A stretch of DNA of 64,000 nt from NCBI GenBank assembly GCA_965112735.1, contig OZ218960.1, positions 1,488,001 to 1,552,000 on the forward strand. Direction: 5' to 3'. Shown piece after piece: positions 4,043 to 63,452 of the stretch (position 1 is the first letter of the stretch; the number at the start of each line of letters is the position of its first letter). This DNA is from Phaeosaccion multiseriatum. Its lineage: Eukaryota > Protista > Ochrophyta, other classes. The position numbers were made by a program, and so were the translations under genes. A model generated the notes under the pieces. That model was not told the origin of the DNA, made no database searches, and saw nothing but the letters and a program-made list of their open reading frames with translations.

Positions 4043-6306
4043 ATGAACGCGTTTTCAGCCATCAGCTCTTCGGTGCTGCTGCTGCTGCTGCTCGCAGCCC
4101 TTTCGACGGCAGGGACTGGTCTCGCAGCCTCAGCAGAGCACGAGGAGAAGGATGCATTCCGTTCCATCCGAACCCTGTGGGCAAATGATCACAGTCTCAC
4201 GACGCTTGGGGTTTCCTCGCTCTCGTCGCTGCGATCTGCTTCCTCGGCCTCGTCGTCGGGAAGCTTGTCGTCTTCTTTCAGCTCGAAGGGAGTGGTTGGG
4301 AGCAGCAGCAGCAGCAGCAGCAACGGCAGCGGAGACCCCGGCTCCAGCAGCAGCAGCGGACGCCTCGACACCAGGACCAGTGGAAGCATCGGCAGCAGTG
4401 GACGTTTCGGCAGCACCAGCAGCGGCATCGGAGGCTCCAGCACCAGCGGCACGGGCAGCAGCACCAGCGGCACAACCTCCTCCTCCTCCTCCTCCTCTGC
4501 GACGACGAGCAGCGGCAGTAGCGGGGCGAGCTCCTCCTCCTCGTCCTCCTCTCCTAAGTCCGTCTACTGGGATGAGTATGAGCCGAGGCTCCAGCCCCGC
4601 TGGATCAAGGACCACGGCAATTGGCTCTACAAAGTCCCGGAGCCCAAGTGGAAAGAGAAGAACATCTTCCACGACCCCGACGGTACTTGCACGGTGAGTG
4701 AGTGAGTGGACATGAGCGAGCGAGCGAGCGAGTGATTAAGACAGAGCATCCACCTTGAGACTCAGCGACTCCTTCTGCGACCCCCCTCCCCCGCTTGCTC
4801 GCTCGCCAGCATTACTGCAAGCAGAAGGACTTCCCCATGTACGGCATGGACTACTGCCACAGCTACTTGCCCTACTACAAGGACTACTGCATGGACTACT
4901 ACCACCCCTACTACCACCCCTGGGCTGTCGAAGGCGTACAGGTCATCCCAGCGCACCTTCTCTCTTCCTCTTCCTCTTCGACCTTCGGCCACGGCCGAGT
5001 TCTAAATTTCAGCGGGGACTGGACCCCCAAGTGGCCCGGCAAGGAGAACATGTACTGCCACTTCTACTACTCCATCTGCGGCCACCACGTCGCTATCAAG
5101 GGAAGCGAGTGGACGCGCGACTTCGGCGGCGCCAAATACTTTTCCGACTACTACTCTACTGATAGCAGCGACTCCACCTTCTCCGACCCCTACCTTTACA
5201 AGGGTAGCGAGTGGAAGCACGGATACGACGGCGCCAAGGACTACTACTCAGACTCATCCAAGCACGACTACGACGATGCCAAGGACTACTACTCAGACTC
5301 ATTCAAGGACGACTACGACGGCGCCAAGGACTACTACTCAGACTCATCCAAGCACGACTACGACGATGCCAAGGACTACTACTCAGACTCATTCAAGCAC
5401 GACTACGACGGTTCCAAGGACTACTACTCAGACTCATTCAAGCACGACTACGACGATGCCAAGGCCTACTACTCAGACTCATTCAAGCACGAATACGACG
5501 ATGCCAAGGACTACTACTCAGACTCATTCAAGCACAACTACGACGGCGCCAAGGACTACTACTCAGACTCATTCAAGCACGACTACGACGGCGCCAGGGA
5601 CTACTACTCAGACTCATCAAAGCCCAGCGACTACGACGGCGCCAAGGACTACTACTCAGACTCATCCAAGCACGACTACGAAGATGCCAAGGACTACTAC
5701 TCAGACTCATTCAAGCACGACTACGACGATGCCAAGGACTACTACTCAGACTCATTCAAGCACAACTACGACGGCGCCAAGGACTACTACTCAGACTCAT
5801 CCAAGCACGACTACGACGGCGCCAAGGAATACTACTCAGACTCATCCAAGCACGACTACGACGGCGCCAAGGACTACTACTCAGACTCAGCCAAGCACGA
5901 CTACGAAGATGCCAAGGACTACTACTCAGACTCATCCAAGCACGACTACGACGGCGCCAAAGACTACTACTCAGACTCACTCAAGCACGACGCCAACTAC
6001 TACTCCTCAGCCTCGTCGAAGCACGACTCGTCTGATGCCAGCAACGCCTACTCTTCTGATCCCGACCACTTCTCTGCGGATACGAAGCAGTCTTACTCTC
6101 CAAAGGACCACTCCAATTCTGAACCCAGCGGCTCGGTCACCTTTCGTGACATACCGAGCGGCTTCTACTCTTCCATGGGCAGCGACTCGACCTACCCGGA
6201 TGACTTTTCTGATGTCAGCGGCCCCAGCTCTTTCAATGGCGGCGGCTCGACCATCTCTTATGATATCCCGACGGGTCCCGACTGGAAGCGCAACTCAGCT
6301 TCCTAG
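4043..6306 (+). CDS. Secreted Ser/Gly-rich, Tyr/His/Cys-module protein, paralog A, with Tyr/Asp repeat tail
   Basis: Signal peptide MNAFSAISSSVLLLLLLAALSTAG; exons 4043-4693 and 4810-6306 (phase 0 GT-AG); modules shared with three paralogs. Confidence 0.85.
5215..5982 (+). repeat. Coding tandem repeat, 17 x 45 bp (KHDYDGAKDYYSDS[S/F])
   Basis: Units counted from the translation; one unit has an extra codon. Confidence 0.95.
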
Positions 6307-6454
6307 ATCGCATATATATATATATGCTGCCAATCGTATCTAATCTGATGTATCCATGACCACATCTCTCAAAGCTCTCTCAAACACTTGTCACGCCGGT
6401 GTGTGTCTGTTTCGCTCATGTCGGCATGCGCGCGGCCCCGCGCCCCCTGCTTCG

Positions 6455-6541
<87 letters not shown>

Positions 6542-7032
6542 GCATTGTGCTCACGTGTGTGTGTGTGTTTGTGTTTGTATTTGTGTGGTGTCGCTTATTC
6601 TTTGTGCTTGTGTGTGTGCGTGCATGTCGCAGTCCGCCAGCGCGATAGGAAGGAGCATACCTAGTCAGATGGACGCCGTCGGCGATCCGTAGTAGGGGGC
6701 AGGACCACGCATCTCCACCTCCTGCACACCGGCAAGGAAGGACCACGAACTTCAAAAGCGTATCCATCAAATTGCATCGGCTTCCGCGACGAGGCAGGGA
6801 GGCTCAGAAGAACGTTGAGCTCCTGCACTACTGATTGGAGTGTGCGGATGAGGCAGAAAGATCACAGATGCAGTACAGTACCAACACGCTAGCCCAACAA
6901 AACATATAACAGCAACGTAGTTGCTGCTGCTGGCTTCCTAAGAGTGACCGTCGAGCCTTATGACGATGGGGCATTTTTCACACTACACCCGCCACTTTTC
7001 TGCTTCGCTTCTAGCCCGCAGCCTCTGCAGCA

Positions 7033-9000
7033 ATGAAGACTTTCTCAGCCTGGGGGGGGTTGCTTCTCGCAGTTCTCTTGATGGAAACGACTGGCCTCGC
7101 AGCCTCAGCCGAGCACAACGAAAAGGCCGCTGACGCCCCTGAGAAGGGTTTGTTCCGCTCCATCCGATCCCTGTGGGCAGGAGATCACAGCCTCACGACG
7201 CTGGGCCTTTCCTCGTTCTCGTCGCTGGGGTCTACTTCCTCGGCCCCGTCGGGGGGCTCGGGGTCTTCCTCCGGCTCGAGGGGGGTGGGTGGGAGCAGCG
7301 GCAGCGGCAGCGGCAACGGTAGCGGGGGCCCTAGCTCCGGCAGCGGAGGCGCCAGCTCCGGCAACGGAGGCTCCAGCACCAGCAGCGGCTCCGGGAGCAG
7401 CACCAGCGGCACATCGTCCTCCTCCGGGACGACGAGCAGCACCAGCGGGAGCAGCACCAGCGGGGGCAGCACCAGCGGGGCACCTTTTTCCTCCTCCTCC
7501 TCCTCCTCCTCCTCCTCTGGAGTACCCGTCGTCTACTGGAACGACTATCAGCCCAAGCTTCACCCCCGCTGGATCAAGGACGACGGCAAGTGGCTCTACA
7601 AAGTCCCGGAGCCCAAGTGGAAAGAGAAGAACATCTTCCATGACCCCGACGGTACTTGCACGGTGAGTGAGTCGGATCGAGGGTGTGTGAGGGTGTGAGA
7701 GCTTGAGTTATGCTTCCCGACTGGCTGGCGCTTTAGGGTGGGATCTGCCTCACGCGCCCCCATGCCCCCTCGCTCGCTCACTCACTCGCAGCACGTTTGC
7801 GAGAAGGACAACGACATGCCATTGTACGACCTCGAGTATTGCAAGAGCTTCGAGAGCTACTACAACCGCTATTGCACCGACTACTACCACCCCTACTACC
7901 ACCCCTGGGCTGTCGAGGGCGTCGAGGTCATCCCAGCGCACCTTCTCGGCTCTTCCTCTTCCTCTTCGACCTCCGGCCACCGTGGCCGAGAGCTAAAGTT
8001 GAGCGAAAACTGGGCCCCCAAGTGGCCCGGCAAGGAGAACATGTACTGCCACTTCTACTACTCGGTCTGCGGCAGTTACATCGCTCTCAAGGGCTCCATC
8101 TCGAACCCCACTTCCGGCAGTGGCAGCAGCTCCGGCTCCGGCTCGGGATCCTCCTCGTCGTCCGGCAGCATCGGCTCATCCTCCGGCTCTATCTCTGGCC
8201 CCACTTCCGGCAGCAGCAGCGGCAGCAGCTCGGGCTCCTCCTCGTCGTCCGGCGGCTCATCCTCCGACTCTATCTCTGGCCCCTCTTCCGGCAGCAGCAG
8301 CAGCTCTGGCTCTGGCTCCAAGCCGTCGTCCGGCAGCATCGGCTCATCCTCCGGCTCTATCTCTGGCCCCACTTCCGGCAGCAGCAGCGGCAGCAGCTCG
8401 GGCTCCTCCTCGTCGTCCGGCGGCTCATCCTCCGGCTCTATCTCTGGCCCCTCTTCCGGCAGCAGCAGCAGCTCCGGCTCCGGCTCCAAGCCGTCGTCCG
8501 GCAGCATCGGCTCATCCTCCGGACACAGCAGCAGCGGCAGTAGCTCGGGATCCTCCTCGTCGTCCGGCAGCATCGGCTCATCCTCCGGCTCTATCTCTGG
8601 CCCCACTTCCGGCAGCAGCAGCGGCAGCAGCTCGGGCTCCTCCTCGTCGTCCGGCGGCTCATCCTCCGGCTCTATCTCTGGCCCCTCTTCCGGCAGCAGC
8701 AGCAGCTCTGGCTCTGGCTCCAAGCCGTCGTCCGGCAGCATCGGCTCATCCTCCGGACACAGCAGTAGCGGCAGTAGCTCGGGCTCCTCCTCGTCGTCCA
8801 GCAGCATCGGCTCTTCCTCCGGACACAGCAGCAGCGGCTGTGAGTCCTCCACCTCCTCCTCCTCCTCCTCCTCCTCCTCCTCCTCCTCCTCCTCCTCCTC
8901 CTCCTCCTCCTCCTCCTCCTCCTCCTCCTCCTCCTCCTCCTCCTCCTCCTCCTCCTCCTCCTCCTTCTCCTCCTCCTCCTCCTCCTCCTCGAGTGACTAG
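7033..9000 (+). CDS. Secreted family paralog B, with Ser/Gly higher-order repeats and poly-Ser tail
   Basis: Signal peptide; exons 7033-7662 and 7792-9000; about three ~168-bp S/G units, then a (TCC)n run at about 8846-8990. Confidence 0.85.
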
Positions 9001-9218
9001 AGGACTCTGGTACTGGCTTTCGCTAGCTCTTTATTCATGACTATATATCTATCAATACATAAACCAAACAAACCTTTCAGTTTTGAAGTGCGAGTGTGGG
9101 GCTCCTGTGGGCCTCGGGGAGAGAACGGAAGAGGCGAAGAGTGATGGAGTCGGAGAGCAGGAAGAATGGAAGGAAGACACGACGACCTCTCCGTCTCTCT
9201 CTCTCTCCTCTCCCTAAG

Positions 9219-10736
9219 TGAGTCGTCTTCGTCCTCCGGCGGCGGCGATCCTTGCCGCAAGCTCACCACCTCCTCCTCCCCCGGCGACTCCTCCGGGTCA
9301 TCCTTCTCCTCGGGCTCCGGCTCATGCTCCTTTTCTGGCCACGGCTCGTCTTCTGGCAGCGGCTCGTCATTCGGCTCGTCCAGCGGCGGCAGCCCCTTCT
9401 ACCGCTACTGGGAGCCCAAGGCCACACCGATAGTTTAAGTTGGAAAGCGTGGCCGCCCGCGGCGTAAATTTCTTGGCCGCCGCTAAACCGTAGAAAGCGA
9501 AAAACCGTGGAAAGGCCTCTGAGTGGGCTGAGAGAGGGCCTTAGGTCGTGCACAGTGTGAGCAGACAAGAAATCGAAAAAAAGGTTCAAGAGTAATCAAT
9601 TCGAATTTCAATTTGGGAGGGGCAGGGGCGGGAACCTTTATTTTTGAGAGGGTCTCAGGCAGCTACAGGCGTCAACCCAAACAACGCAGTCTCCGCGCGC
9701 GCCTACGTAGCCTTTGTAGTGGGACGGGCTTTGTCACTTGGTCTCCTGTGCCTCTTCCCTCCCTGACAGACCGCAGCGGAGGTGACTTGGCCTCCCGTCA
9801 TAAAGCAAGTACTTCCTAAGCAAGACTTAAAGCCCATCACCTCCGGTCCATTGTCGGCAGCCCCAGAGTCATGATGCTCTTCTGTGATGCTGACGATGCT
9901 CTGCTCGTTCCCTCTTATCCTACAGGATGTTGAGGGGGCTGCACTAGCGCATGGCCGTGATACCGCCCCACCAAGAGTTTTGCCAAGTCTTCGCCTTGAT
10001 TCGGTCGGTCCCGACATGGTAGCAGCAGCAGCCAGAGGTCCACAGGAGCTGAAGCCAGTCTTAGACGGGGATCAAGGCGAGAAGAGTCTTCTCCAAGCCG
10101 CCTCGCGCTTGTCTCGCGCGGCGCAATGTATCATCGCGTTCTCGATTTAGAGGAAGGAGGCAGGGGGGCGGGCCGGCTCTGGGTGGGCTCCAGGACCGAA
10201 GGCATGCCGGGCTGGTAGAGAGATGTCCAAGGGACCAAGATGACGGGGTTGAGGAGTGTGAATGGGCGGGTCAAAGAGCAGAAGGGAAAGAAGGCTAAGG
10301 GGGAAGTTTAGGAGGGCACCTTCTCCGCGGGTCGAAGCAAGGGGATTTAGGCGCTTTGCGGTGGGCTCTTTGGACCTAATTTGGACTGATGTAAGCATAA
10401 TAGAGGCCTACACACACTCATACTGTAAGAAGGACACTCATGGGGGGGTGTTCAGGGCCGTCTACGGTTTTTTCCGCCCGCCCGCGGAGATTTTTCCAAA
10501 TGTGCGACGCTTTCCAACATATTTTATCGGTGTGGCCCAAGTGGCCCGAGAAGGAGATCATGTACTGCCACTTCTACTACTCGGTCTGTGGCCACCACGT
10601 CGCTCTCAAGGGAAGCGCGTCCTCCTCCTCCAGCGGCTCGGGTCCCTCTTCCTCGTCGTCCGGCAGCATCGGCTCATCCTCCGGACACAGCAGCAGCGGC
10701 AGCAGCTCGGGCTCCTCCTCTGGCTCGTCCCACTAG
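9219..10736 (+). pseudogene. 5'-truncated paralog of the secreted family, split by a transposon
   Basis: RKLTTSSSPGDSS..PFYRYWEPK (to 9419) resumes as KWPEKEIMYCHFYYSVCG..GSSH* (10538-10736). Matches paralog C; no signal peptide or exon 1. Confidence 0.85.
9420..10537. mobile_element. Non-autonomous TIR DNA transposon (PIF/Harbinger-like), ~1.1 kb
   Basis: 31-bp imperfect TIRs GGCCACACCGATA-N6-GTTGGAAAGCGT at both ends. TSD is CAA (or CCAAG if the ends are drawn 1 bp inward). Removal restores EPKWP. No transposase motif seen. Confidence 0.85.
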
Positions 10737-11185
10737 CTCAGGCCGCGCATTTGGCGCTGGCTTTCGCTAGCTCTCTATCCATGACTATATCTATCAATAC
10801 ATGACCAAACAAACCTTTCAGTTCTCTGAAACTTCCTATACCCCTCACGCCTCCATTCCGTGCGTGTGGGCTTGTATACCTCTCTCGCCGGGTTGCTTCC
10901 TTTCTTCCTGCTCTCCGACTCCATCACTCTTCGCCTCTCCCGTTCTCTCCCCGAGGCCCACAGGAGCCCCACACTCGCACTTCCAAACTCGAGGGGGTGT
11001 CGCTCTTGACTGGTGAGCTTGCACAGAGGTATTCTACAAGCCCACACGCACGGAATGGAGGCGTTCAGAGAACTGAAAGGTTCGTTTGGTCATGTATTGA
11101 TAGATATAGTCATGGATAGAGAGCTAGCGAAAGCCAGCGCCAAATGCGCGGCCTGAGCTCTAGTGGGACGAGCCAGAGGAGGAGC
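10711..11185. repeat. Long inverted repeat formed by convergent paralog 3' ends
   Basis: 10711-10877 is a near-perfect reverse complement of 11035-11185, with small indels. Confidence 0.9.
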
Positions 11186-12418
11186 TGCTGCTGCTGCCGC
11201 TGCTGCCGGAGGACGAGGACGAGGAGGAGCCGTAGCTACCACTGAGGTGATACGCCACCGTCTGGCCGCAGATGGAGTAGTAGAAGTGGCAGTACATGTT
11301 CTCCTTCTCGGGCCACTTGGGCTCCCAGTAGCGGTAGAAGGGGCTGCTGCCGCTGGACGAGCCGGACGACGAGCCGCTGCCAGAAGACGAGCCGTGGCCA
11401 GGGAAGGAGCCTGAACCGGAGCCCGAGGAGAAGGATGATCCGGAGGAGTCGCCGGGGGAGGAGGAGGTGGTGAGCTTGCGGGCGGGGCAAGGAGGGCACT
11501 CGCCCGTCTCGCGGTGGAAGGCCTCGCCCTCTTCGGTCAGAAGGTGGCGCCCGGGGCTGTCCTCCTCGGGGAAGCACTCCGTGCCGCACAACTCGCGGTT
11601 ATGGTCGCCGCTGGAGGACGAAGACGAGGAGGAAGAGCCGCCGCTGGAGGACGAGCCGGAGGATGACCTTCCGTAGGGGCCCTTTGAGAATGTCCAGGGG
11701 TGGTAGTACGGGTGGTAGTAGTCCATGCAGTAGTCCTTGTAGTAGGGCAAGTAGCTGTGGCAGTAGTCCATGCCGTACATGGGGAAGTCCTTCTGCTTGC
11801 AGTAATGCTGGCGAGCGAGCAAGCGGGGGAGGGGGGTCGCAGAAGGGGTCGCTGAGTCTCAAGGTGGATGCTCTGTCTTAATCACTCGCTCGCTCGCTCG
11901 CTCATGTCCACTCACTCACCGTGCAAGTGTGGTCAGGGTCTTCAAACACGTACTCCTCGTGCCACTTGGGCTCCTTGAAAAGTCGAGCCATGGGACAGGC
12001 GAGGAACTAGTTAGTACTTTGTGAGTGAAGTGATTGGTCAACGTTGCTGGAGAAGGCCAAACTCTTCAGTGCTCTTGCTTACCGGGACTTTGTAGAGCCA
12101 CTTGCCGTGGTCATCCTTGATCCAGCGGGGGTGGAGCTTGATATCGTCATAGTCCAGGTGCTTGCCGCCGTGGACGGGGTAGATGCCTCCATGCGATCCC
12201 GAGGAGGAGCCCGAGGATGAGGGCGATGAGCCGCCCCTGCTCCCGGAGGAGCCGCTGAAACCCTTCGGGAAGTACGCCGGGTAGCTCCCGCTGCCGGAGG
12301 AGCCGCTGTTGCTCTTGCTGCTACTCCCGGCGAGCTCACGGTCATCCGCCTGCTCGAGGGAGAGGCCTTGGGCAGCGAGGCATGACGCCAGGAGGAGGGT
12401 GGCAAGGAAAGAGCGCAT
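11160..12418 (-). CDS. Secreted family paralog C (3 exons)
   Basis: MRSFLATLLLASCLAAQGLS signal peptide; exons 12418-12083, 11973-11920 (EPKWHEEYVFEDPDHTCT), 11807-11160. Confidence 0.85.
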
Positions 12419-13089
12419 GATGATCGACTCGGATGCGAGGTGATGTGTTGGAGTGGTTGTGAAGCCTGAGCAAGCTCCCTCCCCGCTAACAGCATGGAAG
12501 CCTTTAATACGAGTTACTGCTGTAGCATTCTCGCGCCAAAGACAGAACCCAACTGCCAAGGGCAACAGATTCGCAACAGAGTGGAAACTGCCCAAGGGCA
12601 ACATGGGCCAGGAAATTACAACTCACGTTTACAAGCGGCCGTGCCAGACTCATGACTGCCTGCGTCGGAGGCGAATCACGCATTGTCCCCCTCTTCTCCA
12701 GTACTGAAGCCAGTGGAGCTTGGGAAGCAAACTTCGAAGGAGGAAGGTCACAGATCGGTGCTAACGTAGATAAGTAGGGGATGAAGGAGGAGGAAGAGGG
12801 ACAAGGAAGAAGCAAACACATCACCCCCATCACCACGTCCTCCACACGGCCGCATCACCGCGTCCTCCCCACCTCAAAAGAGAAGAGAAAAAGAAACGAA
12901 TACGTACTTTTAGTGTGTGTGTGCGTGCGTGTGGCGAGACCTTTTTTTTCGCAAAAGGGCCTTCCACAACTTATTTGAAAATGGAAGTTATGGAAGGAAG
13001 AGAGGAGCCTCCTCACACTACGCCCGCCACTTCCTTCCCTACTCCGCTTTCTGCCCTGCAGTCTCAGCAAGCAAGCACAGCAAGCAGCA

Positions 13090-14260
13090 ATGAAGACTCT
13101 CTCAGCCATCGGTCCTTCCGCGGTGCTGCTTCTCGCAGTCCTATTGACGGCATCGACTGGCTTCGCAGCCTCAACGGACCACGAGGAGAAGGGTTTGTTC
13201 CGCTCCATCCGATCCCTGTGGGCAGGAGATCACAGCCTCACCACGCTTGGCACTTCCGCCCTCTCATCGTCGGGGTCTGCTTCCTCGGCCTCTTCGGGCT
13301 CATCTTCTTCCTCCGGCTCGAGAGGGGTGGGTGGGAGCGGCGGCAGCGGCAGCGGCAACGGTAGCAGCACCAGCGACACGTCTTCCTCCTCCGGGACGAC
13401 GAGCAGCACCAGCAGCACATCTTCCTCCTCCGGGACGACGAGCAGCACCAGCGACACGTCTTCCTCCTCCGGGACGACGAGCAGCACCAGCAGCACATCT
13501 TCCTCCTCCTCCTCCTCCTCCTCCTCCTCTGGAGTACCCGTCGTCTACTGGAACGACTATCAGCCCAAGCTTCACCCCCGCTGGATCAAGGATGACCACG
13601 GCAAGTGGCTCTACAAAGTCCCGGAGCCCAAGTGGAAAGAGAAGAACATCTTCCATGACCCCGACGGTACTTGCACGGTGAGTGAGTCGGATCGAGGGTG
13701 TGTGAGGGTGTGAGAGCTTGAGTTATGCTTCCCGACTGGCTGGCGCTTTAGGGTGGGATCTGCCTCTCCCCTCACGCGCCCCCATGCCCCCTCGCTCGCT
13801 CACTCACTCGCAGCACGTTTGCGAGAAGGACAACGACATGCCATTGTACGACCTCAAGTACTGCAAGAGCTTCGAGAGCTACTACAAGAGCTACTGCACA
13901 TATTACTACGACCCCTTCTCTCATCCTTGGCAGCTCGAGGGCGTGCAGGTGATCCCAGCGCACCTTCTCGGCTCTTCCTCTTCGACCTCTGGCCACGGCC
14001 GCGAGCTAAAGTTGAGCGAAAACTGGGCCCCCAAGTGGCCCGGCAAGGAGCACATGTACTGCCACTTCTACTACTCGGTCTGCGGCAGTTACATCGCTCT
14101 CAAATCGGGCCCCACTTCCGGCAGCTCCGGCTCCGGCTCCTCCTCGTCGCCCGGCAGCATCGGCTCATCCTCCAGCTCTATCTCTGGCCCCTCTTCCGGC
14201 AGCAGCAGCAGCTCCGGCTCTATCTCTGGCCCCTCTTCCGGAAGCTCATTTTTCGCGTAG
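13090..14260 (+). CDS. Secreted family paralog D (short tail)
   Basis: Signal peptide; exons 13090-13677 and 13814-14260; intron nearly identical to that of paralog B. Confidence 0.85.
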
Positions 14261-15004
14261 CTCAGCTCTATATCCATGACTATATCTATCAATACATGAA
14301 CAAACGAACCTTTCAGTTCAACTTCCTATACCCCTCACGCCTCCATTCCGTGCGTGTGGGCTTGTATAATACCTCTGTGCGAGCTCACCAGTCGAGAGCG
14401 ACACCCCCTCGAGTTTTGAAGTGTGAGTGTGGGGCTCCTGTGGGCCTCGGGGAGAGAACGGGAGAGGCGAAGAGTGATGGAGTCGGAGAGCACAGGAAGC
14501 CCGAGGTAGGTGGAGAGATACCAAGCCGTCATCACTCTCGTCACTCGTCGATGAAGCTTCCGGCACACGAGCAGAGCAGCAGGTTGGCCTTCTCTTGTTC
14601 CTTGTTCAGAAGCACGCGGGTAGCCTCACGTGGAAGCCTGTTTCGGTGGCCTGAAAAGACAATCATCGACGCTCTCATGGACCCCCTCTGCCCTGCCTGG
14701 CAGGGACCCAGTACCGCCATATTTTTTAGTACATCTGGCGAGGGAGGTCGCAAGTCAAACTTCAATTTAGCTATTTATGTCTCGCATCCTCGGCAGTAAA
14801 AGGTGAAGGGCGTCGGAAGAGCGGGGGGAGACGGTTCCCTTCTCGGCAATGTAGGCCTGTTCCTTCTCTTCAATCTGTATCACTCTCTGCGAAACGTTCA
14901 GGCCTGTCCCTCCCTCGCTTCGCATGCTTTGCATATCTAGCGTACGCTTGCCGGCGGGAGCCGGGCCAACGGAGGCTGTATGCAGTACGTTTCTCACACG
15001 CCTC

Positions 15005-19753: not shown

Positions 19754-22666
19754 TGTGTGTGCGTGTGTGCGTGTGTGTGCGTACGTGTGTGTGCGTACGT
19801 GTGTGTGCAGTGTGTGTGCGTACGTGTGTGTGCGTGTGTGTGTGTGTGTGTGCATTTGGCGCGGGGGGGGGGGGTTGGGGGAGGCGAATTAATTCGATGT
19901 CGGGATTTGGTAGGGCATGCGGGCATCCATTCATTGACTTCTGTGAGTGATACGCAGTTACGCAAGGTGTCTTAAAAGGCGATAAGAGAGTCCCACTCAC
20001 CCCCCTCCAAGGGCAAAAGAGAGAACACAACTCCTTCGCACACACGCACGCACACACACACACACACGCACACACACACGCACGCACCGCTTCCTCTTGC
20101 TTGGCGCAGACATGCAGCATAAGCTCCACAGCCTTATCGTCCCTACCCGCAGCCACGCAGCAAGCGATGACGGAAGTGTACGTTGCCTGAGGGAGGGAGG
20201 GAGGGAGGGAGGGTCAGGGGCGTGGTCAGGGTCAGGGTCTAGGGGCGGAGGGAGGGAATGAGGGAGGGAATGAGGGAGGGAGGGAGGGAGGGAGGGAGGG
20301 AGGGAGGGAGGGAGGGAGGGAGGGAGGGAAGGGAGGGAGGGAGGGAGGGAGGGAGGGAGGGAGGGAGGGAAGGGAGGGAAGGGAGGGAGGGAGGGAGGGA
20401 GGGAGGGAAGGGAGGGAAGGAGGGAGGGAAGGGAGGGAAGGGAGGGAGGTAGAGGGGGTGGGAAGCTGGTTGAAGAGGGTCCAGACAGGAAGACGGATTT
20501 TGAGTTTGAGTTTGATTGAAGTATGCACGCACGCACGCACGCACCGAGTCTGGAGGGACGCCCCTCTCTTGCATCTCTGTGAGCAGTGCCTGGGCTTCTT
20601 GCCACTGCGCTGTGGCAGACGAGCAAGTGGCCAGGGCAGAGATGGCGATGTTGTAGTGCACCTGTTGGTGATACAGTAACGCAGGGCAGGCATATGGGCA
20701 GGGCAGGGCAGGGCAGGGCAGGCAGGGCAGCAAGGGGGGGGGGGGGGAAGGTACATGTGGGAATGGTCGGGGAGTACAAGATACTGGTGGTGTCCCTCTC
20801 CTCTCTCCCCTCCCTCACACTCACACGCACACAGCACGCACGCACGCACGCACGCACGCACACACGCCCCACACGCGCACGCACGCACACACACACTACA
20901 CGCACGCACGCACGCACGCACGCACGCACTCACCGTATTGCAAATGCCGCTCTCTGTGGCAATGTTGAGAAGTCTGCGCATGTCGGCAAGCATCGTGGCG
21001 CCCCCACCACTCCGCTCCGGCGAGTCTCGACAGACGAGCATGACGGAGCTGAAGGTGAATGTGTCAGGCTTGAAGCCTGCGGCCTTCATCTCGTTGAGGT
21101 AGCGGAGCGCACGCTCCAGCTGCGAGAGCAGGGGGGAGGGGGGGGGGAGAAGAGAGAGGAGAAGAGACGGGAAGAGAGAGGTAGAAAGGAGAGAGGGGGG
21201 GCAATGAGCGGCGCGTATGTACACATGGGCATTCCTTCCCTCCCTCCCCTTCCCTCCCCTTCCCTCCATCGCTCCCTCCCTCCCTCCATCCATCCACTTC
21301 CCTCCCTCCCTCCCTCCCTCCATCCATCCATCCCTCCCTCCCTCCCTCCCTCCCTCCTCTCCCCTCCCTCATCTCTTCCTGCCTATACTCCTCCACCCAC
21401 CTTCCTGCTGGTGGCGCAGCTCGCAATGGCGGTGTTGTACATAACCCTGTCCGGCGTAATGGCAATGTCCTCCCTACCCATGAGCTCGAACAGGGCGTGT
21501 CCGAAGCTCTCGGGGGCCTTCCCTATGATTTCCATGGCGCTAGAAGAGAGGGCAGAGCAGAGCAGAGCAGGCGGAGGAGGGTAGGTGGAGAGGTGAGATG
21601 GCAGCACATACACGCACACAGAAGGCATATAGATATAAGGTGGCTGTACATGCACATACACGCACATAGACAGGCATATAGATATAAGGTGGCTGTGCAT
21701 GCACATACACGCACATAGACAGGCATATAGATATAAGGTGGCTGCACACAACACGGGAGGTACCTGCAAGGGCACTGACACACACGTACACAACACGTAC
21801 ACACACACCTTTAACACACACGTACACAACACGTACACACACACCTTTAACACACACGTACACAACACGTACACACACACCTTTAACACACACGTACACA
21901 ACACGTACACACACACCTTTAACACACACGTACACAAACACGTGCACACACTTTAAGCACACACGCACACATACGGTACACATATACATATACACACTAC
22001 ATGCACAACACATAATGCAGACCCGAATGTTGGTGATTCAGCAGGCAGAATTCACAAATGGCTGCCTGGAGTTGGAGCAATAAACACGGGACACGATACA
22101 CAGCTGCCCAAACCTCTCTACCTCCGTCACATTGCCCAGCCCTGCTCCCTCACTCTCCCTCCCTCCCTCCCTCACTCACTCACTCACTTCATTCACCCAC
22201 TCACTCACTCACTCACTCACTCACTCACCCACTAACCCACTCACTCCCTCACTCACTCACTCACTCACTCACCAGGTAAAGTTGAGTGTGTCTGGCAGGA
22301 TGCCTGCATCAATCATCTCCTTGAGCACCGAAAGCACTCTCTCGGCCGCTGCCTCTCCGCGGCTACTCCGCCCACCACCACCCCCACCTCGACTCTCTTT
22401 ACTCTCAGCACTGACGTCATCATCATCCGTCATCGTTAGCACCTCTTCGTTGTCGGCGTCGCTGCTACTGCTACTACTACTGCTGCTGCTGCTGCTGTCC
22501 TCCTCGGACTGAGGTTCCCGGGCAGCTACGCGGATGACCTCGTTGTACGCGATGTTGGACATGGCGACGCCATCCCCTGCCATCATCTCCATCACCTCCC
22601 GGACCTTACCACACACACACACGCGCGCGCACACACACGCACACACACACACATGCACACACGCGT

Positions 22667-24727: not shown

Positions 24728-27700
24728 TAAGAGATGTGGAGAGACAGGTGAAACAAAAAAGACGGAAGGGAGAAGAGACGGACAAAAACAGCTCCCCTGC
24801 ACCGGAGGAAACGGAAGAAAAGGAAGGAGGCAAGGTATCCTAGGGCGAGTAGGTGCACGAATATATGCATACATATAAACCGACAGGCCTACTCTCTCTC
24901 CCTCCCCCTCCTCTCTCGTTCTCTCCTCTCTCCCCCCTCTCTACTCTTTTCTCCCTTTGTCTCTCTCATCCTCCCCTCTCCCTCCCTCCATCCCTCCCCC
25001 CCCCCCTCTCTCTCCCTCCGTCTCTCGTCTCTACCTTGATTTCCTGATACAACTGCTGCGCTCTGTCCTGAATCTCCAAGTCCGGTAAAGGCCGAGTGCT
25101 GCTTGCCTCCTTGGTGGAGAGACAGCGGGCCTGCGCAGACGCCATAGTCTGAAGTGCGTGTGTGTAGTGGCGAGGCGCCAGCATGAGCCCGTCTGTCTGC
25201 ATGGTACGAAGTACCTCCCATGCACGTTGGTGATCGCCCGACTTTTGGAACCCCACTAAGGCACTTAGCCACACATCTTGGGGGGGGGGATGGGGGGAGG
25301 GAGGGAGGGAGGGAGGGAGGGAGAGAGGGGGGTCAATATCTTCTCTGCCCTTCTCCCTTTGAAGGAAGTCAAGTCAGCAGCACCTCATGGAAGGAACGAG
25401 CGTCAGAGCGTCAGTGGTTGTTGGCAGGGCCTCAGAAGCAGCTGACCATTCCTCTCTCTGCCTCTCCCCTGTGCCTCTCTCTCAGCCCTCTACACTCTCC
25501 CCTCTCTCCTCCCTCCCGCCCCCCCCTCCCCCCCCCTCTTTCGTCTCCCCTCTCCCCTCTTCCCTCTACCTCTCCCCTCCCCCCCCCCTCTCCCGTCTCC
25601 CCTTCTCCCCTTCTCCCCTCTTCTCCCTCTCCCCTCTTCCCTCTACCTCTCCCCTCCCCCCCCCCCCCTCTCCCGTCTCCCCTTCTCCCCTTCTCCCTTC
25701 TCCCCTCTTCTCCCTCACCTTCGTCCAACTCTCTCCCTTCTCCCCTCTTCTCCCTCACCTTCGTCCAACTCTCTCCCTTCTCCCCTCTTGTCCCTCACCT
25801 TCGTCCAACTCGATACCCTTGCTCTTCATCCACTCCCGTACCGCGTCCCCCATCCCGTGGGCATCGCTCTGACTGAGCGAGCGGAGAACGCACTTGAAGA
25901 AGTAGGGGGTAAATTTGAGCGGAGGAGCGGAAGGATCGCGGCCGCCTGACTTGTCTTCTTCCATGAGTGTTGTCAGCAGAGTGACAGCCTGTGTGGGGGG
26001 AGGTAGGGTAGGGTAGAGTAGGGTAGGGTAGGGCAGGGTAGGGTAGGGCAGGGTAGGGTTGGGTAGGGTAGGGTAGGGTAGGGTAGGGAAGGGTAGGGTA
26101 GGGTAGGGTAGGGTAGGGTAGGGTAGGGTAGGGTAGGGTTGGCAGGGTAGGGTAGGGTTGGTAGGGCAGGGTAGGGTAGGGTAGAGTAGTGTAGGGTAGG
26201 GTAGGGTAGAGTAGGGTAGGGCAGAGTAGGGTAGGGTAGGGCAGGGTAGGGTAGGGTACGGTAGGGTAGGGCAGGGCAAGGTAGGGTAGGGTAGGGTAGG
26301 GTAGGGTAGGGTAGGGTAGGGTAGGGTAGGGTAGGGTAGGGTAGGGTAGGGCAGGGTAAGGTAGGGCAGGGCAAGGTAGGGTAGGGTAGGGTAGGGTAGG
26401 ATAGGGCAGGGTAGGGTAGGGTAGGGTAGGGCAGGGTAGGGTAGGGTAGGGTAGAGTAGGGTAGGGTGGGGTAGGGTAGGGTAGGGTAGGGCAGGGTAGG
26501 GTGGGGTAGGGTAGAGTAGGGTAGGGTGGGGTAGGGTAGGGTAGGGTAGGGTAGGGTAGGGTAGGGTAGGGTAGGGCAGGGTAAGGTAGGGCAGGGCAAG
26601 GTAGGGTAGGGTAGGGTAGGGTAGGATAGGGCAGGGTAGCGCAGGGTAGGGCAGGGTAGCGCAGGGTAGGGCAGGATACGGTACGGTAGGGTAGGGTAGG
26701 GTAGGGTGGGGTGGGGTAGGGTAGGGTGGGTAGGGTAGGGTAGGGTAGGGTAGGGTAGGGTAGGGCAGGGTAGGGCAGAGTAAGGTAGGGTAGGGTAGGG
26801 TAGGGTAGGGTAGGGCAGGGCAGGGTAGGGTAGGGTAGGGCAGGGTAGGGTAGGGCAGGGTAGGGTAGGGTAGGGTAGAGTAGGGTAGGGTGGGGTAGGG
26901 TAGGGTAGGGTAGGGCAGGGTAGGGTGGGGTAGGGTAGAGTAGGGTAGGGTGGGGTGGGGTAGGGTAGGGTAGGGTAGGGTAGGGTAGGGTAGGGTAGGG
27001 CAGGGTAAGGTAGGGCAGGGCAAGGTAGGGTAGGGTAGGGTAGGGTAGGGTAGCGCAGGGTAGCGCAGGGTAGGGCAGGATACGGTACGGTAGGGTAGGG
27101 TAGGGTAGGGTGGGGTGGGGTAGGGTAGGGTAGGGTAGGGTAGGGTAGGGTAGGGTAGGGCAGGGTAGGGCAGGGTAGGGCAGAGTAAGGTAGGGTAGGG
27201 TAGGGTAGGGTAGGGTAGGGCAGGGCAGGGTAGGGTAGGGTAGGGCAGGGTAGGGTAGGATACGGTAGGGTAGGGTAGGGTAGGGTGGGGTGGGGTAGGG
27301 TAGGGTAGGGTAGGGTAGGGTAGGGTAGGGTGGGGTAGGGTAGGGTAGGGTAGGGTAGGGTAGGGTAGGGCAGGGTAAGGTAGGGTAGGGTAGAGTAGGG
27401 TAGGGCAGGGTAGGGAGGGGTGGGTTAGGGTAGGGTAGGGCAGGGTAGGGTAGGGTGGGGTAGGGTAGAGTAGGGTGGGGTAGGGTAGGGTAGGGTAGGG
27501 TAGAGTAGGGTGGGGTAGGGTAGGGTGGGGTAGGGTAAGGCAGATGGCCCTCTCTCTCTCAATATATTAATCAATCACCTTGTGCGTGTCTCTCACATCC
27601 GACACACGACACTCACTCACTACCTTTGCACCTACTCACCCAATCACTCACACACTGACAAACCACCCACCCACCCACCCAATCACTCACTCACTCACTC

Positions 27701-29391
27701 ACTCACTCACTCACTCACTCACTCACTCACTCACCCACTCACACACTGACCAACCACCCATCCACCCACTCACTCACTCACTCACTCACTCACTCAGTCA
27801 GTCAGTCAGCCAGCCACTCACTCCCTCACCTCCTGCGGGGCGCCTTCGGCGGTGTACATGCGGATGACCTCCACATATACATCCGTGTTGGGGTGGAAGC
27901 CGCACTCTTGCATCTCAGCGAGCAGGTTCGTCATCCCGTCTAAGTTCTGCATCATTCGGCTCGCCTGTAGAGCACAGTACAGCACAGTAGAGCAGTTGGT
28001 GATACAGCAGCACAGTAGAGCAGTTGGTGATACAGGACAGTAGTTGGTGATACAGCAGCACAGTAGAGCAGTTGGTGATAGAGTATCAATAGCATCAGTT
28101 GGTTGGTGATACAGCAGCAGTATAGCTGTTGGTGACGTCACCTTGATGCAGAGGGAGAAGCTCCGTTCGTTGGGCTCGATATTATTCTCAGTCATATCGG
28201 ACATTAGACTCAGCGCGTTCTCGGGCTTGGGGGAAAGAGGGGAAAGGGGGGGGGGTGAGAGGGAGGAGTGAGGAGGGGGGGGGGGACAAGAAGCAAGGAA
28301 GGCGGAAGGACGCAGGGACGGAAGGAAACAACGAAGGAAGGAGGGAAGGTAGGAAGGAGGGAAGGAAGGAAGGAAGGAAGGAAGGAAGGAAGGAAGGAGG
28401 GAAGGGAGGCAGGGAGTGGTTGTCCGGCGCGGCCGTCACCCTCTCTCTGGGCTTGGGCCCTCCTCCCACCCTCCCTCCCTCCCTCCCTCCCTCCCTTCCC
28501 TTCCTCAGCCAAATTGCTGCCTCCCTCCTTCCCTCCCTCTGGGCGCGCTTCCCCCCCATGAGCTCACGCCGCTCCCTCCAAAATCGACCGAAAGACCGCC
28601 ACTCCTCACTCGCTCACTGATTAACTTTGCTATGGCGCAATGTCATTGGTCATGAAGTTCGTACACTGAGACTGAAATTGAAAGTGAAACTGACCTGGTT
28701 CTCATTGATGTAGGTGCCGATGAGCGAGTTGTAGGTGTAGCAGTCAGGTATGCATCCCTCCGTCCTCATCTCCTCAAACACTTCGATGGCCTTAGCCTAA
28801 GAAATAGTAGGAAGGACAGGGGAGTGAGGAGAGAGGGAGGGAGGGAGGGAGGGAGGGAGGGAGGGAGTGAGGAGAGAGGGAGGGAGGGAGGGAGGGAGGG
28901 AGGGAGGGAGGGAGGGAGGGAGGGAGGGAGGGAGGAAGGGAGGGAGAGAGGAAGGGAGGGAGGAAGGCAAGGCAGTAGCAGGGCACACAACAAACACCCT
29001 TTCCTTTGAGACATATTAAAATCTCGGGCACTGTATAATTGATGGACGCGGTCTTTTGCCTGCCTTTTCAGTCACTCTCTTCCTTCCACTTACCCACTGC
29101 TTTGCCTTGTTACATGCTCTCAGAGTGAAGCCGAAGGACCTCGCATCCGGCTTGACTCCCTGCGCCTTCATTGCCTGTGTGATGGAATGGAGAGTAGGAC
29201 AGAGAGCAGGGGGGAAAGGAGGGAGGGAGGGAGGGAGGGAGGGAGGGAGGGGGAAAGGAGGGAGGGAGGCAGGGAGGGAGGGAGGGAGGGAGAGGGAGGG
29301 AGGGAGGGAGGGAGGGAGGGAGAGTGAAAAACTTGCAGGAGGGCAGGACGTCAAAAGAGAGACTAATGCATGCACGCCCCCACATCCCACG

Positions 29392-32068: not shown

Positions 32069-34112
32069 ATGGCGAAAGGCGGCAAGCGCAAGTTTGATGG
32101 AGGTGAGGGCGGCGGCGGGGGAGGAGGAGGAGCAGGGGAAAGAGGAGGCCGAGGAGGGAGGGGAGGAAGAGGGGGCAGGGGAGGGAGAGGAGGAAGAGGA
32201 GGTGGCGCGAGCAAGCGAGGGAGAGGAGCAGCAGCAAATGATGGGGGGGGCAAAAAGGTGCATTTTTCAGAGCACGTGGATACCCAAGAGGCGCCGAGAA
32301 AGAATGGGGGCGACGGCGAAGAATACGATGAGGATGATGGAGACGACATCGACGGGGATGGAGACGCTATGCTCGGATCTACAGGCGGGGGTCGAAGGCG
32401 ACGGGATCGTATCGCAGCCGGGATGGAGGAGGAGGAGGACAGCGAAGCAGAGGATGAGGAGGGTAAGGAGGAGGGAGACGGGTACGATGATGATGATGAT
32501 GATGATGAAGCCGACACACCCGTTCGGCCCTCGCGAGAGCAGAATGTGGACGGGGAAGAGGAGGCAAGAGACACGCAGCTCGACGACACGGGCGAAGTGA
32601 TGGAGCCCTTCCACCTCAAGGAGGAGCGGCAAGAGGGCTTCTTTGATCAGAACGGGAACTACGTGTGGGCGAAGGAGGACGCCGAGCCTGACGCCTGGCT
32701 GGCGGGGATGGAAGAGGACGGGCTGGAGGCGTCTATGAGTGCGGCTGCGCGGGCCAGGCAGGAGCAGGAGAGCGCTTCCATCGCCGCGCAGCACAAGCGG
32801 TCGCTGCACAAGCAACCTGTGCTGGAGCAGTACAAGGAATTGCTCGCCATCCTCCAACCCAAGGAGACATGCCTAGGGGCGCTCAAGAGGCTGAGGGCGA
32901 CCGGGGGGAAGGCAGGCAGCGGTAGAGGAGGGGGGAGGGCGGCGGCGGCGGGGCAGCAGCAGCAGAAGAAGAAGAAGGACAAGGAGGGAGGGAAGGGGGG
33001 TGAGGCGGCAGGGGCGACAGGGGCGACAGCAGCCGGAGGAGGGGCATGGTGAGCAGCAGGGGGTGAGCGCGGGACCAATTCACTCGCGCACCCTCACACG
33101 AGTTTGGCCCCATGTATTAAGGGTGTCTCTCAGCTTGCTTGCTTGCTTGCTTGCTTGCTTGTTTTCCTTCCTTCGTCGCATGAACGTATGTCGTGGGGTC
33201 CTTCGGTCCTCCCTCCTCTCCTCTCCTCGGCACCATAGTCAGTATGCCCCCCTTCCTCTTTTCTTGCCTTTGCTTTACCCAACCCCCCTCCCTTCTCTCT
33301 CTTTCCGTCTTTTTGACTCACTCACTCACTCACCCACTCCCTCATTCACTCCCTCACTCCCTCACCCACCCACTCACCCACTCACTCCTCACTCTCCCAC
33401 TCCCTCACTCACTCCCTCCCTCACTCACCTAACTTGACATGACTCCCTCAGGTCGAGTGAGGACAAAGCCAGCTTCGAGCGAGTCACAGACCTCGCGGAC
33501 AATCTCCTGCAGGAGGAGGGCCATGTCGACATTTACCAAATGAAGCGCGAGGAGATTGAGGAGAAGACGCGAGCCATGGAGAGCAGGCGCCAGAGGTACC
33601 TGGATAGCATCGGGGAAGGGGGAGGAGGAAGTAGTTCCGCAGGCGGCGGAGGAAGCTACTTCGGTGGAAGAGGTGGGCAGTCTGATGGTGCTACTGCTGC
33701 TGCTGCAGTTTCTGCCGCTCCCGAGGGGGTGTGTTTTGAGTACAAGGGCAAGGACGGAAACCTACACGGGCCCTTCGCTCTCGCGCAAGTGCGGGAGTGG
33801 GTGGAGGGGGGCTTCTTTAGCGGAGAAAATGTGGTGCAGATGCGGTGTATAAACCCACCCATAACAACAAATGGCAACAAGGGCACTGGGGAAGAAGGTG
33901 GGGCAGCAGCTACATCAGCAGCAGTTGGTGATACAGCAGGCTCCTCCAAGGGCTCAACAGGGGCGGAGGACTTGATTGCGGATTTGGATGCAGATGACGA
34001 CGACGAGGAGGAGGAGAAAGAGAAGGAGGCTGTATCTTCCCCAGCAACAGGAGCAGTGGGGGCAGCGGCGTGGGTAGATTCGGATAAGATTTCTTTCGAG
34101 GAGTACGCCTGA
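32069..34112 (+). CDS. CD2BP2: CD2BP2/U5-52K/Lin1-like spliceosomal GYF-domain protein
   Basis: Exons 32069-33048 and 33452-34112; MEPFHLKEERQEGFFDQNGNYV..DAWL, LQPKETCLGALKRL, VTDLADNLLQEEGHVDIYQMKRE, GYF domain HGPFALAQVREWVEGGFF. Confidence 0.9.
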
Positions 34113-39016: not shown

Positions 39017-39068
<52 letters not shown>

Positions 39069-39598
39069 CTCCTCTTTCTCCCTCCCTTCCTCCCACCCTC
39101 TCTCTTTCTCTCTCTCTCGCTGTGTGTGTGTGTGTTTGCGTGTGCTTGCGTGTGTGCGTGCAACTGAAGGTACGCCTGGATGGCGAGTAAGCGCTCTTCC
39201 TTCACCTCCGGACCCGTCAAGGCCAAGATCCAGCCCGATCCGACGGCACCTCAGCAACAGCACAAGACAACAGCCTCGGGTGTGGTTCGAAGTGGTGCCA
39301 ATAGCGTCGCCAGCAGTAGCTCCGAGCAGCACCAACAGCAGCAGCAGAGAGTGTTCTTGGCACGCAAGCAGGTCCCCCCGCCCCGGCGCAGTTCCTTCAC
39401 AGAGACAGCATCAACAGTTGGTGATACAGCAGCAGGAGAAGGAGGAGCCGGCGGCGGCGGCGGTGGCGGCGCACATTACGTGGCGGCTGCAGTGGCGGCG
39501 GCAAAAGCGGGGCCTCCGAAGAACGCGCCCGGCACGGCAGCGGAAGTGAGTCAGTCGTTAGCCAGCACTACCCCAACCTCACAGCAGCAGCAGTCGGT

Positions 39599-39647
<49 letters not shown>

Positions 39648-41243: not shown

Positions 41244-41286
<43 letters not shown>

Positions 41287-47497: not shown

Positions 47498-47902
47498 GTA
47501 AGTGAGCAAGCGCAAGCGAAGCAAGCGATGAATGGAAGAGACTCTGATTGAGTGTGTGTGTGTGTGTGTGCAAAAGCAAAAAAAAAAAAGCGCCATCAGA
47601 GAGTCACCTCATCCCGCCATTCCGCACAGAGTGGGAAGGAAGGAAGGAAGGAAGGAAGGAAGGTGCTGTTGGTTTGTTTGTCGGTCGGTCGGTCGGTCGG
47701 TCGGTCAGTCAGTAGGGACCTCTCTCACAACACGCTCCTCCACCCTCCTTTCTCGGTGACGTATCTCACACTTGTATCCTCTCCTACTCACTCTTTTGAC
47801 GTGGTGTATATGTGTATTTGTGCCCCCACCCTTCTTCTTGCCCACCCCCGTTGCCTCCACACTGCCATTCTCTCTCTCTCTCTCTCTGTGTGTGTGTGAC
47901 AG

Positions 47903-56035: not shown

Positions 56036-56218
56036 AAGTAAGGCAAAGACCGCTTCAATAAAAAAAAAAAAAAAGGGCAGCCAAAAACCCAGCTGTGAGT
56101 CTATGACGCACCAACTCAGATACCAGCCAGTCCCGCGCTGCTGCGACAGCGAGGGGTGCACCGGCAAAGGAGACGGGTGCGCTGGCACGTGTATCTACGG
56201 TAAAAACGCGGCAAGAAC

Positions 56219-57722
<1,504 letters not shown>

Positions 57723-63421: not shown

Positions 63422-63452
<31 letters not shown>

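Follow-up and report, generated by a model that had tools for sequence, protein, structure and literature searches.

A tandem cluster of lineage-restricted, putatively secreted modular proteins in a contig of Phaeosaccion multiseriatum: candidate components of an extracellular layer

A window of 64,000 nucleotides (nt) from Phaeosaccion multiseriatum (contig OZ218960.1, forward strand, 1,488,001 to 1,552,000; positions below count from its first letter) was analyzed, in which a cluster of ~10 kb (4043-14260) comprises four intact paralogs (A, B, and D on the forward strand, C on the reverse strand) and one dead copy (E). Judged from their sequences, the encoded proteins form a lineage-restricted tandem family of secreted modular proteins, and the role that we tentatively put first, as the most likely one, is that of a component of an extracellular layer, be it a wall, a cyst or spore wall, a coat, or mucilage. 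Such a structural role is suggested by the signal peptide in the absence of a membrane anchor, by the even number of invariant cysteines, by the Ser/Gly/Thr spacers, and by the expanding repeat tails. Cleavage at Arg-x-Leu (RxL) tripeptides, cross-linking, and mineral templating are treated here as hypotheses.

Results

The gene models of A–D were derived from open reading frames (ORFs) and splice signals in the window sequence (Table 1). All four genes share an intron of phase 0 (GTGAGT...CAG, 112-136 nt), located right behind the codons for Thr-Cys-Thr (TCT), and gene C has an additional intron (GTAAGC...AAG) behind Lys-Val-Pro (KVP). By blastn, nucleotide identity was 72% over 1081 nt between A and B, 70% over 1100 nt between A and D, and 81% over 1262 nt between B and D; the module cores of A, B, and D matched one another in tblastn with E = 1e-49 to 1e-80. 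Outside the cluster, the remainder of the window (54 kb) contained no more copies of the family by tblastn.

To characterize the divergence among the paralogs, the ratio of nonsynonymous to synonymous substitutions (dN/dS; pairwise Nei-Gojobori) was calculated for the N-terminus, the two intron-separated parts of module 1 (1a and 1b), the linker, and module 2, and ranged from 0.1 to 0.8. Third codon positions carried an excess of differences in all segments, including the linker between the modules, and the reading frame was preserved over spacers of unequal length in all four copies. The modules themselves are of high complexity, with 50 of ~100 alignment columns invariant across the four copies. 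From these substitution patterns, we conclude that all segments of A–D are under purifying selection. The conserved position, phase, and splice sites of the intron, dN/dS values below 1, the third-position excess, the maintained frames, and the E-values between paralogs together argue that A–D are genuine genes, as far as sequence alone can tell. The initial annotation, which had counted four intact genes and one pseudogene, is in agreement with these models.

As a candidate correction of the models, the linker between the modules (..AVEGVQVIPAHLL..GHGRxL..) was considered as an unannotated in-frame intron, which had been suspected from a pyrimidine tract and a TTTCAG in A. It was rejected because substitutions pile up at the third position of codons (6/4/16 differences at the first, second, and third position between A and D), dN/dS of the linker is 0.25-0.8, and B has no plausible acceptor. 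The C-specific linker insert contained no GT..AG intron candidate either.

All four proteins show the same order of parts, namely a signal-peptide-like start, a segment ending in RxL, a Ser/Gly/Thr tract, module 1, a linker, module 2, and a paralog-specific tail. At the N-terminus, a hydrophobic core of 10-14 residues lies inside the first 21 residues and is followed by small residues; hydropathy reached its maximum (2.3-3.05, 11-residue window) within these first 21 residues. The same hydropathy scan of A–D revealed neither a later window above the transmembrane threshold nor a hydrophobic C-terminus. Secretion of A–D is therefore plausible on sequence grounds, as was expected for the secreted-type family that had been annotated. 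Past the signal peptide, 10-21 mostly acidic residues end in R-x-L, and in A, B, and D the conserved string WAxDHSLTTLG stands right behind this tripeptide. The Ser/Gly/Thr tract ahead of module 1 comprises ~55-120 residues.

Module 1 (73-75 residues) reads LHPRWIKDDHGKWLYKVPEPKWKEKNIFHDPDGTCT followed by HxC..YC..YY..YC.DYYHPYYHPW; it contains four invariant Cys and is cut by the common intron. Module 2 (21 residues, WxPKWPxKExMYCHFYYSxCG) contains two invariant Cys. The strings previously reported for both modules were right, with the end of module 1 in D (TYYYDPFSHPW) as the only deviation. Tyr, His, Trp, Phe, and Cys together account for 36-42% of the modules and Ser plus Gly for only 5-9%; outside the modules, Ser, Gly, and Thr make up 37-75% of the residues of A–D. 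In A, B, and D, the linker (AVEGVQVIPAHLL-Sn-GHGR(V/E)L..) has a length of ~31-34 residues; that of C is specific to this protein, comprises 122 residues, and has four extra Cys. As a possible origin of module 2, an internal duplication of the EPKW..C..C part of module 1 was tried and discarded, as the similarity was not significant (shuffle P 0.16-0.19).

The tails differ between the paralogs. That of A is acidic and Tyr-rich and consists of a repeated unit of 15 residues, KHDYD(D/G)AKDYYSDS(S/F); the whole protein A, with a net charge of -49, contains the dipeptide DY 32 times. The tail of B comprises ~300 amino acids (aa) of Ser/Gly with nested 81-234-nt repeats and a terminal (TCC)48, that is, 48 Ser codons, and the tails of C and D are short and consist of Ser/Gly. 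The 17 copies of the 45-nt repeat in A and the nested repeats in B demonstrate, as far as the DNA records it, that the low-complexity tails grow by tandem repetition.

RxL tripeptides were located exactly where the initial annotation had listed them: RTL43 and RVL280 in A, RSL45 and REL276 in B, RSL41 and REL259 in D, and REL27, REL201, RHL217, and RKL240 in C (numbers are residues). The N-terminal ones (RTL43, RSL45, RSL41, and REL27) lie ~10-21 residues beyond the likely end of the signal peptide, in the contexts RTLWA (A), RSLWA (B and D), and RELAG (C). In composition-preserving shuffles, the probability of reaching the observed RxL count or more was lowest for C (0.0008), followed by B (0.02), D (0.03), and A (0.06); these values refer to a short motif picked after the sequence had been inspected. 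Moreover, A, B, and D have the same two sites by inheritance, so that few independent events are represented. The linker RxL is conserved only in these three proteins, by common descent, and the three internal RxL of C, which fall within the C-specific insert, are not aligned to this site. The 17 repeats in the acidic tail of A are free of RxL. The strongest point of the RxL claim is the N-terminal site: the N-terminal region of C cannot be aligned with that of A, B, and D, yet it carries R-x-L ~10 residues past the signal peptide.

To find relatives of the family, protein and DNA collections were searched. At E<=1, none of eight exon translations had a Pfam match that rose above noise, and sequence profile searches of the PDB with two family alignments (A1 and A2) returned a single chance-level match (E=0.73). 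With exon 2 of gene A as query, a word-indexed search of 5.8 billion clusters yielded no match. A HMMER profile spanning module 1b, the linker, and module 2 had no match at E<=0.001 among 1.84 billion representative proteins, a library size at which only relatives above ~45 bits are visible. A–D themselves were not matched in this library, which places the proteome of the source organism outside it; its sources include MMETSP and EukProt, which hold many diatom transcriptomes, and oomycete proteins are also present. By back-translated pattern and tblastn, no match was obtained in the JGI metagenomes (both module alignments), in IMG/VR, or in the prokaryotic genomes of GTDB, and five module motif strings were absent from the full-text literature searched. 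By its sequence, the family is an orphan without a named domain in the collections searched. This agrees with the initial failure to recognize a domain; of the searches suggested at that time (NR, MMETSP, and Pfam), those of Pfam, with exon translations, and of the library including MMETSP, with the HMMER profile, yielded no relative.

Copy E, annotated as a pseudogene, is real and preserved in two pieces. It had been described as sharing the signal peptide and module 1, which did not hold: the copy is truncated at its 5′ end and lacks both, because the 3′ flank of B sits immediately upstream. Its module 2 is broken between WEPK and WPEKE by an insertion of 1.1 kb. This insertion is bounded by 34-nt terminal inverted repeats (9420-9453 and 10504-10537, 85% complementary, GGCCACACCGATA.. 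and ..TATCGGTGTGGCC) and flanked by a short target duplication, CCAAG or CAA, the assignment being ambiguous. These features and the lack of a long ORF make it a probable non-autonomous DNA transposon. Inside the terminal repeats, another inverted pair (9500-9518 and 10454-10472) occupies subterminal positions. The ends of the insertion did not occur elsewhere within the 64-kb window.

Mosaic tracts of 90-95% identity were found between copies that are otherwise ~65-72% alike. A tract of 285 nt shared by A and C on opposite strands (4639-4923 vs. 11974-11694) was 93% identical and included the whole intron, and its flanks were far more diverged. Module 2 of A was nearest to that of copy E (90.6%, 5026-5110 vs. 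10536-10620), and B and D were similar along their entire length. Such high-identity tracts among diverged paralogs indicate gene conversion and unequal exchange, recent or ongoing, in what appears to be a young and dynamic cluster. A common element of ~90 nt, located 80-270 nt past the stop codons of B, C, and D, may represent a common 3′ untranslated region or termination signal. Between A and B lies a (TG)58 microsatellite (6475-6591); similar CA/TG tracts fill many introns of the neighboring genes.

The window is nuclear DNA of a eukaryote; it has spliceosomal introns, a GC content of ~58%, and an abundance of low-complexity tracts, (CA)n among them. A uracil phosphoribosyltransferase (UPRT) gene with at least two exons was identified downstream of the cluster (Table 1). 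The top-scoring named matches of the UPRT exon were all stramenopiles (44-58% identity), among them Phytophthora (58%), Dictyocha (54%), Attheya (50%), Globisporangium, Nothophytophthora, Thraustotheca, Chrysoparadoxa, and Blastocystis; lower scores were obtained for one dinoflagellate and one red alga, in a search whose length filter may have hidden longer homologs of other groups. From the window sequence, a stramenopile source is a lead, not a result. The high GC content and the many-intron, microsatellite-laden neighboring genes presumably resemble neither sequenced diatoms nor sequenced oomycetes.

Among the other neighbors, a gene for a protein kinase of the TKL/Tyr type with a C-terminal RING finger carried no taxonomic signal, its exon matching metagenomic proteins, animal RYK-type kinases, and a Chlamydomonas protein at 36-51%; the same architecture was seen in two metagenomic proteins with 45% identity. 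A GYF-domain gene has long Gly/Arg and acidic low-complexity tracts, and its product is presumably similar to CD2BP2. A Ser/Thr kinase gene (37154-43000, +) stands behind two ORFs of 678 and 624 aa of poly-Q/N/S/G, which possibly belong to that gene as a very long, disordered N-terminal region. A minisatellite with a 15-nt unit (25755-27023, -) translates as (PTLPY)n, and the strongest GC skew of the window (+0.61, 26001-28000) coincides with it. One ORF (52439-54208, -) contains an SBBP-type beta-propeller repeat (Pfam PF06739), a repeat that is mostly bacterial; another (55544-56188, -) looks similar in sequence and has a signal-peptide-like start, with no Pfam match. Two ankyrin-repeat ORFs and a PPR-repeat exon were located at 46585-47505 (+), 62992-63804 (-), and 20232-21323 (-), the PPR gene being seemingly broken up into numerous small exons. 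Neither Rfam nor tRNA scans, run over all 64 kb of the window, returned a match.

Table 1. Coordinates of the cluster and of neighboring genes in the window; descending positions are on the reverse strand.
Feature	Position	Strand	Details
Gene A	exons 4043-4693, 4810-6306; intron 4694-4809	+	715 aa; ORFs and splice signals
A, signal peptide	~4043-4132	+
A, RTL	4169-4177	+
A, Ser/Gly spacer	~4211-4570	+
A, module 1	4589-4693 and 4810-4923	+
A, linker	4924-5019	+
A, RVL	4996-5004	+
A, module 2	5020-5082	+
A, tail repeats	5215-5991	+	17.2 tandem copies, 45-nt unit, 91% matches
Gene B	exons 7033-7662, 7792-9000	+	612 aa; ORFs and splice signals
B, RSL	7165-7173	+
B, module 1	7558-7662 and 7792-7908	+
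B, REL	7987-7995	+
B, module 2	8011-8073	+
Copy E, piece 1	9255-9420	+	C-type linker ending ..FYRYWEPK; 95% identical to 11481-11316
Insertion in copy E	9420-10537		1.1 kb; terminal inverted repeats, target duplication, no long ORF
Copy E, piece 2	10534-10736	+	rest of module 2 (KWPEKEIMYCHFYYSVCG), HHVALKGS, Ser/Gly tail, stop; then common 3′ flank
Gene C	exons 12418-12083, 11973-11920, 11807-11160	-	345 aa; ORFs and splice signals
C, N-terminal REL	12340-12332	-
C, module 1	12136-12083, 11973-11920, and 11807-11694	-
C, linker REL	11597-11589	-
C, linker RHL	11549-11541	-
C, linker RKL	11480-11472	-
C, module 2	11327-11265	-
Gene D	exons 13090-13677, 13814-14260	+	344 aa; ORFs and splice signals
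D, RSL	13210-13218	+
D, module 1	13570-13677 and 13814-13930	+
D, REL	14000-14008	+
D, module 2	14024-14086	+
3′-flank element, ~90 nt	9079-9175	+	95-96% identity, blastn
3′-flank element behind C	10989-10893	inverted	95-96% identity, blastn
3′-flank element behind D	14412-14499		95-96% identity, blastn
GYF-domain gene	32069-34112	+	long Gly/Arg and acidic low-complexity tracts
TKL/Tyr-type protein kinase with C-terminal RING finger	49178-51448	+
UPRT gene	56204-57175	+	at least 2 exons; Pfam PF14681, E = 4e-27 and 3e-18

Discussion

If A–D are indeed components of an extracellular layer, their parts can be assigned putative functions. The six invariant Cys might form three disulfides, making compact knots of the aromatic modules, and the Ser/Gly tracts would then be disordered, hydrated spacers that could be O-glycosylated or phosphorylated. 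Tyr and His might engage in oxidative (dityrosine-type) or metal-mediated cross-links by which the protein is anchored in an insoluble matrix, with the disulfide-stabilized Tyr/His modules acting as cross-linking or anchoring knots. At the N-terminal RxL, processing in the secretory pathway could remove a short pro-segment, as in diatom RXL domains, and the internal RxL may serve to part module 2 and the tail from module 1. The variety of the tails, strongly acidic and rich in Asp, Tyr, and Ser in A and neutral Ser/Gly in B, C, and D, might tune charge and hydration.

Several observations weigh against a role in an extracellular layer with such processing. The enrichment of RxL is modest and mostly inherited among the paralogs. 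As no relatives were obtained from any of the collections, conservation of RxL and Cys is visible within the cluster only. AlphaFold2, applied to an alignment of the four paralogs that covered only their exon-2 part, from module 1b through the linker to module 2 (module 1 is split by the intron), reached a mean predicted local confidence (pLDDT) of 40 and a predicted template-modeling score (pTM) of 0.23; at this pLDDT, no confident fold was obtained that would bear out compact modules. No peroxidase, tyrosinase, or similar wall-modifying enzyme was present among the neighboring genes scanned. Finally, in the maximum-likelihood tree of UPRT the window sequence is placed on a long branch in a polytomy.

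A secreted adhesive or mucilage for the attachment of cells, spores, or cysts, based on Tyr/3,4-dihydroxyphenylalanine (DOPA) chemistry or on coacervation of Ser-phosphate with acidic tails, is unlikely, but comes next in our ranking. The Tyr/His/Lys modules and the poly-Ser segments resemble marine adhesive proteins (background in PMC4220933), and fast-growing repeat tails and tandem duplication would fit as well. However, in the one diatom tested, a Tyr-rich candidate selected by this reasoning turned out to belong to the wall instead of acting as an adhesive, and DOPA was reportedly lacking (PMC4220933); the sequence of A–D itself holds nothing that would separate adhesion from incorporation into a wall.

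A biomineral function is speculative for this cluster, and we consider it improbable that A–D are precursors of a silica or other biomineral matrix, in which RxL-processed polyproteins would free Tyr/His modules together with acidic or Ser-rich mineral-templating peptides. In its favor, the signal peptide and the RXL-domain layout are as in diatom biosilica-associated proteins, the Ser-rich tracts and the acidic Tyr/Asp tail of A recall biomineral phosphoproteins, and the UPRT matches are stramenopiles that include a diatom and a silicoflagellate. Silacidins are acidic Ser/Asp/Glu peptides that are cut out of their precursor at repeated RXL sites; A also has an acidic tail, but RxL occurs in A only at residues 43 and 280 and not between the tail repeats. 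Cingulins combine Lys/Ser-rich segments in alternation with Tyr/Trp-rich ones, whereas KxxK occurred 0-1 times per protein in A–D and KK was not found. In silaffins, pentalysine clusters comprise 5 Lys in 12-14 aa within Ser/Lys-rich sequence (PMC9650480). The Ser/Gly/Thr spacers of A–D are almost without Lys and have no pentalysine cluster; the sole 14-aa window with 5 Lys (KWLYKVPEPKWKEK) lies in module 1 of B and D, the maximum in A is 4 Lys per window, and C has no window with at least 4. For the mineral-templating precursors envisaged in the initial annotation, it is a point against that the Ser/Gly parts lack the lysine-rich elements by which silaffins and cingulins are defined and targeted to silica. 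Further points against a biomineral function are the lack of a relative in the library drawing on MMETSP and EukProt, the placement of the host by UPRT on a long branch in a polytomy, and the 58% GC and intron-rich, microsatellite-laden neighboring genes, which we take to differ from sequenced diatoms.

There is also a slim chance that the family represents a novel stramenopile class of polyproteins of a wall or biomineral matrix. Three products would then arise through a secretory protease specific for RxL, namely a Ser-rich phosphoglycopeptide from the N-terminus, a Tyr/His module knotted by disulfides, and a small module-2 peptide with the paralog-specific tail, and the pieces would become oxidatively cross-linked or template mineral; the poly-DY tail of A could be Tyr-sulfated or phosphorylated. 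If this were true, diatom-type RXL processing and matrix assembly would extend to a new protein fold and possibly to a new lineage.

A secreted metal-binding or redox family, which would chelate Cu, Zn, Fe, or Ni outside the cell to take them up, store them, or detoxify them, has a similarly low probability. The clustering of invariant His, Cys, Tyr, and Asp in HPYYHPW, MYCHFYY, and HDPDGTCTH would fit such a function. However, no match to a known metal-binding domain was found in Pfam or with the PDB profiles, disulfides are the simpler explanation for invariant Cys that occur in even number in a secreted protein, and chelation needs neither long Ser/Gly spacers nor repeat tails.

Even less probable are host-directed effectors of a parasitic stramenopile, processed in a manner similar to RxLR or PEXEL proteins shortly past the signal peptide. 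The RxL 10-21 residues beyond the signal peptide, the best named UPRT match (Phytophthora, 58%), and the occurrence of an orphan, tandemly duplicated family with an adjoining transposon are consistent with such effectors. Against them, mucin-like Ser/Gly tracts are presumably atypical of this class, many-intron, repeat-rich neighboring genes are presumably unlike oomycete genomes, and no homolog appeared in the profile search of the library with oomycete proteins. RXL-type processing is documented for oomycete effectors and Plasmodium PEXEL proteins (PMC11754927, PMC4740378), where cleavage within the secretory pathway takes place at an Arg-x-Leu core that likewise stands shortly behind the signal peptide. 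The residues that follow differ in A–D: oomycete motifs are RxLR within ~40 aa, usually with an EER behind, whereas RTLW, RSLW, and RELA were found here with no EER and no WY/LWY effector domain; PEXEL/TEXEL motifs are RxLxE/Q/D or RRLxx, whereas position five is occupied by Ala in proteins A, B, and D and by Gly in C, and RRL does not occur.

That the cluster is non-functional, consisting of chance ORFs over low-complexity repeats or of a decaying duplicated segment, is hardly credible: (AGC)n-type tracts do hold several frames open and copy E is plainly dead, but the invariant columns of the high-complexity modules, dN/dS below 1 with a third-position excess, the conserved intron with canonical splice sites, and the frames maintained despite differing spacer lengths all contradict it.

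A component of an extracellular layer thus remains the reading that we favor, and it would be of wider interest. For most protist lineages the chemistry of the extracellular matrix is known but its proteins hardly are, and matrix proteins are typically orphans that homology-based annotation misses. With its repeated architecture, six invariant Cys, and a series of tail variants within 10 kb, the family offers a tractable entry to the wall or coat of this organism. It may carry two RxL-type proteolytic sites, which lets RXL-type processing be probed beyond diatoms, oomycetes, and apicomplexans. If it is merely a lineage-specific secreted protein, the finding is an ordinary one, as orphan secreted families are common in protist genomes.

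Among known systems, the diatom RXL domain consists of a signal peptide and a short stretch (up to ~30 aa) ending in RXL (PMC5525289). The RXL of diatom frustule proteins has been described as a potential proteolytic site (PMC5525289, PMC9650480), and internal RXL motifs are also found in some of these proteins. By sequence and hydropathy, A–D have a predicted signal peptide and the short RXL-ending stretch of this domain. They resemble silaffins, the cingulins CinY and CinW, and silicanin-1 in this layout and in their secreted, modular, low-complexity character, and they share with cingulins the combination of aromatic-rich domains (Tyr or Trp in cingulins) with Ser-rich ones. In contrast to the diatom RXL proteins, to which there is no sequence similarity, their modules are single-copy with six invariant Cys and not alternating repeats. 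Of the diatom-like RxL usage originally proposed, the N-terminal layout stands, whereas the linker RxL aligns only in A, B, and D.

The mussel foot proteins and the cement of the sandcastle worm also combine Tyr/His/Lys-rich with poly-Ser segments (background in PMC4220933), but these marine invertebrate adhesives belong to an unrelated lineage and have no homology to the family. In the oocyst and sporocyst walls of Eimeria, Tyr-rich secreted proteins have been established by experiment as insoluble wall components (PMC2726925, PMC4776368). Like GAM56, GAM82, and the sporocyst wall protein, A–D are putatively secreted, Tyr-rich, and without homologs; homology to GAM56/GAM82 was not detected. 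In coccidia, the precursors of such Tyr-rich wall proteins give rise to smaller peptides, which are cross-linked by dityrosine, the processing proteases and sites being other than RxL; to our knowledge, Cys-bearing modules and poly-Ser/Gly spacers are not among the features of GAM56/82.

Among orphan Tyr-rich proteins of wall matrices, with the diatom cingulins and those of Eimeria as further examples, AC3362 of the diatom Amphora coffeaeformis is the nearest analogue for the proposed role that is backed by experiment; this component of the wall matrix was found to be insoluble in sodium dodecyl sulfate (SDS) and fluoride (PMC4220933). Both AC3362 and the present family are Tyr-rich orphans of secreted type. 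Unlike AC3362, which has 15.5 mol% Lys and KG repeats and with which no homology was detected, A–D are rich in Ser/Gly and contain Lys only in the modules and in the tail of A. The family is new in sequence and familiar in kind, that of lineage-specific, secreted, low-complexity matrix proteins.

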